NCBI RefSeq assembly: GCF_006345805.1
Contig: NW_021833537.1
Coordinates: 1 to 34,297 of the forward strand
Direction: 5' to 3'
DNA: 34,297 nucleotides
Source: Octopus sinensis
Lineage: Eukaryota
The notes beneath the pieces were generated by a model. The model was not told the DNA's origin, did not search any database, and saw only the letters and a program-made list of their open reading frames with translations. The translations under genes were made by a program, and so were the position numbers. Of the stretch, positions 12,792 through 21,393 are shown piece by piece; positions within the stretch are counted from its first letter, which is position 1, and every line of letters starts with the position of its first letter.

Positions 12792-13365
12792 TTGGGTTGG
12801 TGCGTAATTATTGCAGCTTCTTTTTCAACAAAGTGGAGGTGCAATAGCCCAGTGGTTAGGGCAGCAGACTCGTGGTTTCGATTCCCAGATCATTGTGTGT
12901 GTTTATTGAGCGAAAACACCTAAAAGCTCCACGAGGCTCCGGCTGGGAGTGGTGGCAACCCCTGTGGTACTCTTTCACCACAACTTTCTCTCACTCTTTC
13001 TTCCTGTTTCTTGAGTAACACTGTGATGGACTGGTGTCCTGTCCAGCTGGGAGGAACACATACGCCACAGAAACCGGGAAACCGGGCCCATGAGCCCGGC
13101 CAGGCTTGAAAAGGACGACGTTTATCGTTTTTATTGTTTTTTTTCAATAAATTTTATTCAACAAAAAACAATAACAACATGTAACAAAAACATCTTTAAA
13201 TGATTGTTCTGGAACATATTCACCATCTACTTCAATTACTGCTTCCCATTTGCTTGGCAGACGGTCAGGCCGTCATTTAAAGATGTTTTTGTTAAATATT
13301 GTTATTGTTTTTGTTGAATAAAATTTGTTGAAAAAAAACCCCACAATAATTATGCACCAACCCAA
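12792..13365. mobile_element. Mariner-derived fold-back MITE interrupted by SINE D
   Basis: TA-flanked TIRs TTGGGTTGGTGCGTAATTATTG / CAATAATTATGCACCAACCCAA. Minus-strand 13211-13263 reads RLPSKWEAVIEVDGEYVP, like a mariner transposase C-terminus. Long imperfect inverted arms at ~13145-13203 and 13273-13330. Confidence 0.85.
12835..13120 (+). mobile_element. SINE family D (tRNA-like head) with an alternative 3' part
   Basis: Head GGAGGTGCAATAGCCCAGTGGTTAGGGCAG...GGTTTCGATTCC shared with 25422 and 32813; the 3' part GTGATGGACTGGTGTCCTGTCCAG...CAGAAACCGGG differs from the copy at 25599. Confidence 0.8.
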
Positions 13366-13419: not shown

Positions 13420-14030
13420 AAGCATGGCCTAGTGGTTAGGGTGTTGAACTTATGAAAGTCCTCTAGTTCAGGTTAACCCCTTCATTCTCAGCAGTGGAGA
13501 GAGTACCAAATGGTTGAGGGCAGTAAGTGCCTAACAAATGTCATTTCCAGATACCAGGCACCCAATCTATATCGGCAGACTGAAACTGAAAGAAGCCCAC
13601 CATATATATATATACATACAAAAGTAGTGGGGATGTAAACACACCAAATGTCATTTCCAGATACCAGGCACCCAATCTATATTGGCAGACTGAAACTGAA
13701 AGAAGCCCACCATATATATATATACATACAAAAGTTATGGGGATGTAAACACACCGACACTGGTTGTCAAGTGGTTGTGGTGGAGGACAAACACTCACAC
13801 ACACACACATGATGGGCTTCTTTCAGTTTGTTTCTACCAAATCCACTCTCAAGTCTTTGGTCAGCCCAAATCTATAGTAGAAGTGTGATTCTCAGACTGA
13901 GCAGTGTGTTACGTTCTTGAGCAAAATTCTTCATTTCAATTTGCTTTAGTGCTATGTGGAGACTGGCATGTCAAAGAATAGACCCAACATTTTCTCTGCC
14001 TGTCATAAAAGGTGACTAACAGAGGTCAAG
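13420..14030 (+). mobile_element. Further SINE (head ~13420-13455, body ~13885-14030) split by a ~430-bp patchwork insertion of SINE A fragments in both orientations
   Basis: Head CATGGCCTAGTGGTTAGGGTGTTG; body GTGTTACGTTCTTGAGCAAAATTCTTCATTTC...CCTGTCATAAAAGGTGACTAA. Internal SINE A pieces at 13575-13620 (+) and ~13731-13884 (-). Confidence 0.55.
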
Positions 14031-14220: not shown

Positions 14221-14601
14221 CATCATCATCATCATCATTGTTCGACTGTGGTCGAGACAATGGAATTTACCATGCTACGCCAGACTTCACGGTCCATCAT
14301 AGCATTACGGAGGTCCTGTTGCTGGATGCCTGTAACCCTGGAGATTACATTGGGGTAGGAGAGTGTGCGCCCTCTGGTATTGTGAGTAGATGGCTTTGAG
14401 ATAGATAGATAGATAGATAGATAGATCATCATCATCATCATTGTTCGACCGTGGTCGAGACAATGGAATTTACCATGCTACGCCAGACTTCACGGTCCAT
14501 CATGGCATTACGGAGGTCCTGTTGCTGGATGCCTGTATCCCTGGAGATTACATCAGGGTAGGAGAGTGTGCGCCCTCTGGTATTGTGACTAGATGGCTTT
14601 G

Positions 14602-14633
<32 letters not shown>

Positions 14634-15144
14634 CATCATCATCATTGTTCGACCGTGGTCGAGACAATGGAATTTACCATGCTACGCCAGACTTCACAGT
14701 CCATCATAGCATTATGGAGGTCCTGTTGCTGGATGCCTGTAACCCTGGAGATTACATTGGGGTAGGAGAGTGTGCGCCCTCTGGTATTGTGAGTAGATGG
14801 CTTTGAGATAGATAGATAGATAGATAGATCATCATCATCATTGTTCGACCGTGGTCGAGACAATGGAATTTACCATGCTACGCCAGACTTCACGGTCCAT
14901 CATGGCATTACGGAGGTCCTGTTGCTGATGCCTGATCCCTGGAGATTACATCAGGGTAGGAGAGTGTGCGCCCTCTGGTATTGCGAGTAGATGCCTTCCA
15001 GAGGAGAAGAGTAGAAATTACTTCTTTTTCAGCTCTACAACAATGTCCGGCAAACTGGACTCTCCTCCCTTTCACAAGAGATGACACAGGTGGTAGTTTC
15101 CCATATATTTGCATTTTGGTTGGATGGCGCTTCCACGAGAGATT
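14221..15144 (-). mobile_element. RTE/RTEX-like non-LTR retrotransposon 3' end, amplified as four tandem ~200-bp copies
   Basis: Minus strand reads NLSWKRHPTKMQIYGKLPPVSSLVKGRRVQFAGHCCRAEKEVISTLLLWKASTRNTRGRTLSYPDVISRD, and the other copies continue TGIQQQDLRNAMMDREVWRSMVNSIVSTTVEQ*. This has the RTE-type AGH..R and D.M.DR..WR motifs and a (GAT)n tail. Unit starts at 14238, 14441, 14645 and 14841. Confidence 0.85.
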
Positions 15145-15857: not shown

Positions 15858-15962
15858 TGCTGTGTGGTTAAGAAGTTCACTTCCCAACCACATGGTTTCA
15901 GGTTCAATACCACTGCCTGTTTGGCACTTTGAGCAAACATCCTCTACGATATAGATTGGGCG
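15858..15962 (+). mobile_element. SINE A head fragment (duplicated at 17326-17429)
   Basis: GCTGTGTGGTTAAGAAG...CAACCACATGGTTTCAGGTTCAAT. Confidence 0.75.
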
Positions 15963-16150
15963 CCTGGTATCTGGAAATGACATTTGTTAGGCACTTACTG
16001 CCCTCAACCATTTGGTACTCTCTCCACTGCTGAGAATGAAGTAGAATGGGCTGAGAGGAGACTCGGCATGACCATGGGGGATAAAAATCATACAGAGTGT
16101 ATGATTCTATGCCAATCAGTTGGGTGGCCGTTTGACAGGTGTAGTGTAGA

Positions 16151-16934: not shown

Positions 16935-17220
16935 AGGTGTAGTGTAGAGTGCAAGGGGCCAGCCTGTTGTAACCCCCATTGATCCCCAAAAAAATGAACC
17001 TACCTAACCATAGACATTAAAAATTGAAACGGCCCCTAAATTGAAATCCATACCATCTATTTTCATCCCCTACTAATTCTGGGAGAGTCTTTGGATACAT
17101 ATGTATCTATATGTCTATGTATGTGTGTGTGTGTATATGTATGTACATATGCATGTATGTGTGTATATATATATATATATGTATCTATATGTCTATGTGT
17201 GTGTGTCTGCATGTATATAT

Positions 17221-17252
<32 letters not shown>

Positions 17253-17268
17253 ATATATTGTATGTGTA

Positions 17269-17309
<41 letters not shown>

Positions 17310-17766
17310 ACATAGGCAGAAGCATTGCTGTGTGGTTAAGAAGTTCACTTCCCAACCACATGGTTTCAGGTTCAATTCCACTGCCTGTTTGGCACTTTGA
17401 GCAAACATCCTCTACGATATAGATTGGGCACCTCATCCAAAGAGATGACACAGGTGGTAGTTTCCCATATATCCTACTCATCCTCAGGCACCTCATCCAA
17501 AGGGTCCCATTGGAAGCAACCATCAAAATGCTTTCCATCTGGATTTCCAAGAGTGGCCAAATCAAAATAGGTCACTAAATACCAAATGGGGCTCAGTTCA
17601 CTTCTGATTTTGAAGTGTATCTTTTAGACTAGGGTGAGGTGCCATCCTTGGGTTCTTTATCTCTCTCCTCCTGGGTCTCCAGATTAAACAACACCAGTGT
17701 TCTGAGTTTAATTCATACCACTAAACACTTACAGAAACACTTCTATGTCGCTGGTCTACCACTGGC

Positions 17767-21003: not shown

Positions 21004-21120
21004 TATATTATATGTGTGTGGTGCATGTGTGTGTGTATATATATGTGTGCATATATATGTGTGTATGTGTGTATATATACATATATATATATATATATCA
21101 TATATATATATCTATATATA
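20490..21120. repeat. Alternating (TG)n-(TA)n compound microsatellite
   Basis: Direct reading. Confidence 0.95.
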
Positions 21121-21122
21121 TA

Positions 21123-21393
21123 CCGGAGTAAGCACATGAATGTGAAACAAGATGGAAAAAAGAGTACTCAAATACCAGAGGTAGAGTAATATGCTTTATT
21201 TAAAAGCTGCAGAAATATAACAAAAGCTGTTACTCAGAGTTTCATGTTCCCATACATTGCACAGTTTTGTTAAAATAGAACAGAAATAACGATATCATTA
21301 TTTCTGTTGTATTTTAACAAAACTGTCCGATGAATGGGAGCGTGAAACTCTGAGTAACAGCTTTTGTTATGTTTCTGCTGCTTTTAAATAAAG
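21123..21393 (-). mobile_element. Penelope-like fold-back element, copy 3 (longest, ~96-bp arms)
   Basis: Tail 21123-21193 (reverse complement of the tails in copies 1 and 2); inverted arms 21194-21289 and 21298-21393; 8-nt loop CGATATCA; (TA)n on both sides. Confidence 0.75.
21317..21367 (+). ncRNA. Candidate type I hammerhead ribozyme with U4C core variant
   Basis: Stem I ACAAAA-CTGT / ACAG-c-TTTTGT; core CCGATGA (21327-21333); stem II ATG-GGAG-CGT; GAAA (21344-21347); palindromic stem III ACTC-T-GAGT; GUA triplet (predicted cut after 21356). Confidence 0.6.

Follow-up and report, generated by a model that had tools for sequence, protein, structure and literature searches.

The hammerhead-like motif found at positions 21317–21367 of the window (the 34,297-nucleotide stretch of Octopus sinensis contig NW_021833537.1 that was analysed) is, on balance, probably the relic of a non-canonical Penelope-like element (PLE) hammerhead carrying C at core position 4 (C4), kept in a fossil insertion, and not a working ribozyme. 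As judged from its sequence, the locus is at present a decayed repeat copy with no sign of current function. PLE hammerheads, their sequence heterogeneity, exceptions in their core and the U4C substitution are already documented. A PLE lineage with a native CCGAYGA core and a 3-bp helix II would, if true, be new, and it would be most notable in the (TA)n-targeting clades that have been reported to lack canonical hammerheads (PMC8557442).

Layout of the Hammerhead-Like Motif

The motif is located on the plus strand and reads ACAAAACTGT-CCGATGA-ATG GGAG CGT-GAAA-CTCTGAG-TA-ACAGCTTTTGT. The hammerhead elements listed in the earlier note were all recovered, at the positions given there, by direct reading of the sequence:

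21317–21367, plus strand: hammerhead-like type I domain, right arm of repeat copy A; the only match of the descriptor described below
21323–21326 and 21357–21360: stem I, CTGT/ACAG
21317–21322 and 21362–21367: extension of stem I, ACAAAA/TTTTGT, with C21361 as a bulge
21327–21333: core, CCGATGA
21334–21343: helix II, ATG (21334–21336), GGAG loop and CGT (21341–21343)
21344–21347: GAAA
21347–21355: helix III, ACTC-T-GAGT
21356: A17, with the predicted scissile bond between 21356 and 21357

The type I helix order (I, core, II, GAA, III, H, I) is present in this arm, with 4 + 6 bp in helix I, 3 bp in helix II and 3–4 bp in helix III. Both the C15.2–G16.2 pair and the GUA cleavage triplet are seen. 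The strict core is C3 U4 G5 A6 N7 G8 A9 ... G12 A13 A14 A15.1–U16.1 H17 (PMC3088659), and the arm agrees with it at 11 of 12 conserved positions, the exception being C at position 4. Under the definition of Perreault et al., any core mutation disqualifies a match (PMC3088659). Helix II comprises just three pairs, one of them G·U: in the extant copy they are A-U, U·G and G-C, and the GGAG loop is of a non-GNRA type. The conserved G10.1–C11.1 closing pair of this helix is replaced by A-U in all four arms that contain the pair.

Helix III had been described previously as ACTC-T-GAGT. The sequence is as described, but four base pairs closed by a single-nucleotide loop are impossible in a monomer, so the helix must either consist of 3 bp with a 3-nt loop or form as an intermolecular duplex. 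The string ACUCWGAGU is near-palindromic, and two such strands can pair over 8 bp around a single central mismatch, at −9.9 kcal/mol for one variant of the string and −9.4 kcal/mol for the other. Thus, the small palindromic helix III/loop 3 that permits a dimeric helix III in minimal PLE hammerheads is present. Helix II departs from those hammerheads, having 3 bp and no space for an unpaired nucleotide.

Rarity, Folding and Model Comparisons

Both strands of the window were scanned with our own type I descriptor, which requires at least 4, 3 and 3 bp in stems I, II and III, respectively, and tolerates no more than one mismatch across the 12 conserved positions. The single match was the 21317–21367 site. 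In 200 dinucleotide-preserving shuffles, the descriptor gave a mean of 0.005 matches per window, and the reversed window gave none. The motif is therefore unlikely to have arisen by chance in one window; still, about one window in 200 would be expected to hold such a match. A relaxed descriptor for minimal hammerheads (optional bulge, U3–A8 allowed, helix III down to 1 bp) detected no canonical hammerhead in the window. Two additional matches seem spurious: one with two mismatches at 21422 on the minus strand, inside a repetitive TA-rich run, and one of the relaxed descriptor at 22379 on the plus strand, in repetitive sequence beside a 29-nt tandem array.

The stability of the isolated 52-mer is ordinary: its minimum free energy, −7.8 kcal/mol, is close to that of shuffled sequences (z = +0.09), and folded as a hammerhead the isolated RNA reaches −3.9 kcal/mol. 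No Rfam hammerhead family reached its gathering score over the whole window, and none was found at E ≤ 10 in segments of 401 nt and 61 nt. Covariation in the helices, estimated from the arm alignment with 2–6 sequences per pair, was null, with 241 of 500 shuffles reaching the observed score. In this alignment, 98% of the cells are paired and the pairs are essentially invariant; the single variable pair is CG/UG/UA, a pattern attributable to CpG decay.

The absence of an Rfam match and of covariation, together with a 52-mer that folds no better than shuffles, favours a chance resemblance, in which a hairpin-forming non-autonomous repeat of another class acquired the motif when a 5′ truncation or an internal deletion in copy A put CTGT beside CCGATGA; the motif would then have no ribozyme ancestry, and conservation would be confined to the long hairpin. 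False positives are known to rise when the core is relaxed (PMC3088659), and an event seen in one of 200 windows is to be expected many times genome-wide. Against this, the 30 nt enclosed by a pre-existing 11-bp stem hold not only 11 of the 12 core positions but also two nested mini-helices, the C15.2–G16.2 pair and GUA, all in the correct order. Taken with the anatomy of the repeat family described below, a chance resemblance is possible but considered rather unlikely.

Palindromic Repeat Family

The motif noted earlier proved to be real, but the palindromic repeat in which it is embedded had been missed. The features of the family in the window are as follows:

21073–21121, no strand: (TA)n-rich microsatellite to the left of copy A, with a right-hand (TA)n counterpart at about 21394–21416
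21122–21393, plus strand: copy A, tail and palindrome
21122–21193, plus strand: one-sided unique tail of copy A, ACCGGAGTAAGCACATGAATGTG...GTAATATG, about 72 nt, joined solely to the outer end of the inverted arm
21189–21398, no strand: 210-nt zero-spacer palindrome with arms at 21189–21293 and 21294–21398, 90% complementary
21220–21270, minus strand: mirror-image decayed hammerhead-like domain (the left arm read on the minus strand), core GCAATGT at 21254–21260, helix II ATG/CAT
5577–5758, minus strand: copy B, tail and short hairpin, −51.3 kcal/mol
1996–2182, minus strand: copy C, long hairpin, −32.8 kcal/mol

The family is an interspersed repeat of 180–270 bp, present in three copies. Each copy has the same plan: a 72-nt tail on one side only, followed by an inverted and then a direct 5′-truncated copy of one ~100-nt 3′-terminal sequence. 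The palindrome of copy A represents such an inverted and direct pair, with the hammerhead-like motif in its right arm, and its family-homologous portion stops at 21393. The outer ends are common to all copies: one is formed by the tail, which is conserved at the corresponding junction of copies B and C, and the opposite one by ...GCTGCTTTTAAATAAAG. The inner arm junctions differ in every copy. Both arms of copy A are about 100 nt long. Copy B has a direct arm beginning at CGTGAAAC and an inverted one beginning at AACGGCAACGTG; as a result, neither arm includes the hammerhead core (positions 3–9) or the 5′ strand of stem I. In copy C, the direct arm begins 2 nt ahead of the core and the inverted arm begins at ACTCAGATTAACAGG / ACTCAGATT.

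The arms of one copy are more similar to each other (91–96% identity) than arms of different copies (83–91%), and private variants are common to both arms of a copy. The sequence GAAACTCWGAGTAACAG is invariant over its six matches and forms the hairpin stem in every copy, while the length and apex of the hairpin vary from copy to copy. The invariance of the parts that make up this stem, and a core that is different in each arm or absent, again agree with a fortuitous origin of the motif. The mirror arm of copy A has four core mismatches and escapes the descriptor even when two mismatches are allowed. Each of the three copies has (TA)n on either side.

The whole of copy A folds as one hairpin with a free energy of −152.2 kcal/mol (z = −22.7), which would sequester the hammerhead-like domain in any transcript spanning both arms. 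The stability of this structure raises the question of a long hairpin that is itself the functional unit, as a miRNA-like or endo-siRNA precursor, with the hammerhead-like motif being irrelevant. Rfam miRNA precursor models do produce sub-threshold matches, e.g., MIR8562 with 80 bits and MIR5380 with 74.5 bits, but these are far under the respective gathering scores (211 and 150 bits), and none in the window reaches the gathering level. Matches to unrelated plant and animal families are to be expected of any long perfect hairpin. Moreover, the length and apex differ in every copy and the copies evolve neutrally, and a small-RNA role of the hairpin is considered very improbable.

Other repeat classes were compared with the termini of the family. 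The reading as a miniature element with terminal inverted repeats (TIR-MITE) is out, since the family termini are not mutual inverted repeats. A Helitron or Helentron is likewise out: neither ACYGGAG at the 5′ end nor AAATAAAG at the 3′ end agrees with TC...CTRR, and the hairpin extends to the extreme 3′ end. The absence of both TIRs and Helitron-like ends also counts against a chance hairpin in a repeat of another class. At 21167–21186 in copy A, and correspondingly in copies B and C, the tail contains CAG[A/T]GGTAGAG, which resembles a tRNA A box. This string is probably a coincidence, as its position is wrong for the head of a pol III SINE and there is no B box. A tRNA-SINE reading of the tail was rejected as weak, given that the A-box-like part CAGTGGTAGAG is 10 nt long and at the wrong distance, with no B box and no Rfam tRNA match.

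The motif is not part of any tandem array in the window; each copy stands alone and is palindromic. Exact-pattern scans of metagenome contigs, viral contigs and GTDB genome contigs returned no additional copy of the family, and the family sequence was absent from the published supplements in which it was looked for. Peptides translated across the element had no match in a protein-word search. Exact look-up of two ORFs of the window returned no record.

Relation to Penelope-Like Elements

The Penelope-like context suggested in the earlier note is plausible in view of the (TA)n sites, the head-to-head 5′-truncated copies, the copy-specific breakpoints and the one-sided tail. PLE insertions are characterised by heavy 5′ truncation, a common abutting inverted 5′-truncated copy, a short tail at one end only and a bias towards microsatellites, including (TA)n (Craig et al. 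2021, PMC8557442). All three copies in the window combine direct and adjacent inverted 5′-truncated copies having a common 3′ end, and all three lie in an AT-rich or microsatellite target. A tail at one end is present in 3/3 copies as well, with a length of 72 nt versus the published 30–40 nt. The arms of 50–100 nt are extremely short in comparison with published PLE insertions.

The biochemistry of these elements is known from the Anolis Poseidon protein; acting on AT-rich DNA, this protein cuts both strands and extends each of them (Frangieh et al. 2024, PMC11167929). It initiates reverse transcription at two internal sites, which lie about 90 nt downstream of the position cut by the hammerhead, and the segment separating these sites constitutes the tail (PMC11167929). 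Judged by the polarity of truncation, the hammerhead-like domain of the copies described here has the sense orientation; the outer end is about 37 nt downstream of it, or about 109 nt if the tail is included. This is where a PLE hammerhead would be expected, tens of nucleotides upstream of the start of reverse transcription, and the placement counts against a chance resemblance. The insertion architecture, which is independent of the motif, also points to PLEs and away from that explanation.

PLE hammerheads are located in pLTRs; their helix III is short and palindromic, and they act in dimeric form (Cervera and de la Peña 2014, PMC4209133; for dimer action, also PMC6765202). Dual minimal hammerheads on opposite strands, 100–700 bp apart, have been seen in PLEs (PMC4209133). 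The motif in copy A has in common with minimal PLE hammerheads the type I topology, the short helix I adjoining the core, the GAAAC...GUH arrangement, the C15.2–G16.2 pair and a small near-palindromic helix III that implies dimers. Moreover, PLE motifs are mostly dispersed as single or opposite-strand paired motifs in truncated elements, as here, and exceptions in their core (U3–A8) are known (PMC4209133). The differences consist in C4 instead of U4, a helix II of 3 bp instead of 6–8 bp, an A-U pair at 10.1–11.1 instead of the conserved G-C, and no unpaired nucleotide after A9, where the PLE consensus has one (PMC4209133). No linked RT/GIY-YIG ORF or pLTR was seen, in contrast to the PLE hammerheads.

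Among 10 pseudo-proteins derived from complex ORF segments, Pfam searches detected neither the PLE reverse transcriptase (RVT) nor the GIY-YIG domain, the only match being DDE_3. No PLE ORF or tandem arrangement was seen nearby, and no autonomous parent with the same 3′ end was found in the collections scanned. Non-LTR retrozymes resemble the copies in being short, non-autonomous, PLE pLTR-derived sequences with type I hammerheads (PMC7229834; bioRxiv 10.64898/2026.07.22.740005). However, retrozymes are head-to-tail tandem arrays yielding circRNAs, whereas the copies in the window are solitary and head-to-head palindromic.

Cytosine at Core Position 4

The second core, CCGACAA, which had been reported in another copy on the minus strand, was confirmed at 2055–2061 and belongs to copy C. 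It keeps C4 and has G8 replaced by A; its helix II is ACG/CGT with a GGAA loop, and the 5′ strand of stem I is absent. The proposal that C4 is a trait of the family holds insofar as C4 is common to both independent core-retaining insertions, A and C. It is weakened by the state of copy C, where the G8 change is accompanied by truncation at the core and the loss of the 5′ strand of stem I. Cytosine is found at this position in the right arm of copy A (CCGATGA), in its left arm (GCAATGT) and in the right arm of copy C. Different breakpoints and private variants show that A and C are independent insertions, so the source lineage most likely had C4, as far as a sample of two insertions can indicate. 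The three cores are each one or two transitions from C-CG-A-CG-A; G8 is retained in A but not in C.

A natural U4C hammerhead has been documented in a viroid, where the change "considerably decreases activity in vitro" while infectivity is retained (Ambros and Flores 1998, as cited in PMC3088659). The C4 core is thus not unprecedented. The viroid ribozyme, as described in that citation, has the same single core substitution as the motif in copy A, but it is part of a circular, infectious RNA whose helices and tertiary contacts are canonical in other respects. In the present case, the motif is encoded in DNA as the probable relic of a retroelement, its helices are weak and its activity is hypothetical.

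The site at 21317–21367 might, in principle, be a currently functional C4 hammerhead that cleaves itself after A21356 and belongs to a class variant missed by CUGANGA searches. The motif is complete apart from one core change, C4 occurs in independent copies, and the activity of the U4C viroid hammerhead in vivo is, according to the cited account, sufficient for infectivity (PMC3088659). In addition, PLE hammerheads can require a dimer or a protein, and weak folds are therefore not disqualifying (PMC4209133, PMC11167929). Nevertheless, we regard present-day activity as very unlikely. The insertion is an old fossil with arms that have diverged by 10%, helix II has decayed to A-U/U·G/G-C beneath the non-GNRA GGAG loop, and the hammerhead fold of −3.9 kcal/mol competes with the −152 kcal/mol hairpin. 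There is no second copy nearby on the same strand to serve as a dimer partner: the other two lie more than 15 kb away on the opposite strand and have dead or absent cores. The reported decrease of U4C activity in vitro, as quoted above, points in the same direction.

Proposed Origin and Implications

The preferred reading, a C4 PLE hammerhead surviving as a relic, is consistent with the following scheme, suggested by the anatomy of the copies and the literature. The family would have been made by PLE-type double-strand target-primed reverse transcription into (TA)n. The PLE RT/GIY-YIG nuclease would nick both strands of AT-rich DNA and extend both from internal start sites on the RNA, and this double extension would yield head-to-head truncated cDNAs and a one-sided tail. 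The outer end of each copy would correspond to the point where reverse transcription began. The master RNA was probably ...ACAAAACUGU-CCGAYGA-ACG GGAA CGU-GAAA-CUCWGAG-UA/ACAG... (the slash marks the predicted cut), with C at core position 4, A10.1–U11.1 and a 3-bp helix II with a GNRA loop. These reconstructed ancestral states, i.e., helix II ACG/CGU and the GGAA tetraloop, are more hammerhead-like than the extant copy. Several results weigh against the preferred reading: no PLE reverse transcriptase or GIY-YIG remnant among the ORF segments analysed, no parent element in the collections scanned, no Rfam hammerhead match at E ≤ 10, a tail longer than published ones, stem variation ascribable to CpG decay and a core represented by two independent insertions.

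Cleavage of such an RNA, if any, would take place after A17 (between 21356 and 21357 in copy A), in a dimer formed via the near-palindromic helix III and/or with the assistance of a protein, and with reduced efficiency. C4 removes the N3-H contact of the uridine turn, and catalysis should weaken. For the hammerhead of one PLE, protein is needed for cleavage, and hammerhead-null mutants of the RNA of this element still insert in vitro (PMC11167929). Since cleavage is dispensable for insertion under these conditions, a lineage could keep a crippled core and still be competent for transposition. Taken together, the viable U4C viroid, the insertion of hammerhead-null PLE RNA and the protein dependence of the ribozyme make a weakened core in a PLE lineage plausible with no new catalytic solution.

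The copies in the window themselves are neutral fossils, as shown by arm divergence of about 10%, by cores that have decayed or are missing, and by the hairpin that competes with the hammerhead fold. No cleavage is expected of them: the core is decayed in one arm of copy A and in copy C, and it is truncated off copy B.

A bolder proposition is that a (TA)n-targeting PLE lineage, possibly of a clade called hammerhead-less, natively uses a CCGAYGA hammerhead with a 3-bp, GNRA-capped helix II that is active as a dimer and/or with protein. Naiad PLEs, which target (TA)n, have been reported without canonical hammerheads (PMC8557442), and this counts against the preferred reading. We consider the bolder proposition improbable. 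If it were true, "hammerhead-less" PLEs would carry a core variant missed by CUGANGA descriptors and Rfam models. If C4 were native to a successful PLE lineage, either a cellular retroelement tolerates U4C, adding to the one precedent from a viroid, or PLEs can multiply despite a crippled ribozyme, in agreement with the dispensability of cleavage in vitro. Either outcome would bear on the role of PLE hammerheads, and strict-core descriptors would undercount them.

Other Repeats of the Window

The window is rich in other repetitive sequences. A tRNA-SINE-like repeat ending in ...GACTGAAACTGAAAGAAGCCC and (TA)n occurs in multiple copies in both orientations, at the following positions:

10021–10202 and 11578–11759: tRNA-SINE-like repeats
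13480–13574 and 15947–16041: tRNA-SINE-like repeats
29.0–29.4 kb: tRNA-SINE-like repeats
33.1–34.0 kb: tRNA-SINE-like repeats

One inverted pair of these repeats is 99% complementary, with the members 2.4 kb apart. The repeats presumably resemble octopus SINEs, as would suit a cephalopod host.

A remnant of a Tc1/mariner-type transposase (Pfam DDE_3, E = 1.6e-7) is located at about 10450–10880 on the plus strand and continues into a 61/123-nt tandem array at 10728–11036, in which the 61-nt unit is repeated 5.1 times. On the minus strand, ORF pieces at 14222–14997 and 17188–17571 resemble the C-terminal tail of a LINE protein and lie within a tandem array of a 203-nt unit (×3.9). These pieces have no Pfam match. 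A composite query assembled from them showed 90% identity to a 157-aa ORF on a 576-bp ENA metagenome contig (P0001). Eight short ENA contigs obtained with the LINE-tail query contained no copy of the palindromic family in the contig sequence scanned.

Between 16200 and 16938, a 184-nt unit is repeated four times in tandem with 92% matches; it contains a tRNA-T-arm-like string, GAGTTCAAATTCCGCCGAGGTCGAC, and no hammerhead motif. Very large simple repeats occupy 85–755, 3272–3883, 8199–8490, 23113–24180 and 30531–31492, and they account for the blocks of extreme GC skew. They include (AGAT)168, (TAA)204, (TCTA)75, (ATT)366 with a local GC-content of 8.6%, and a 15-nt ACCACCACCACCATT unit repeated 47–64 times. 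About 0.8 kb downstream of copy A, at 22180–22375, a 29-nt unit, GAAATGTGGGCTGTGAAATATGGGCCGA, is repeated 6.8 times and is also periodic at 58 and 87 nt. A second small near-palindrome, with 66-nt arms at 13138–13203 and 13273–13338 that are 80% complementary, has a spacer of 69 nt.
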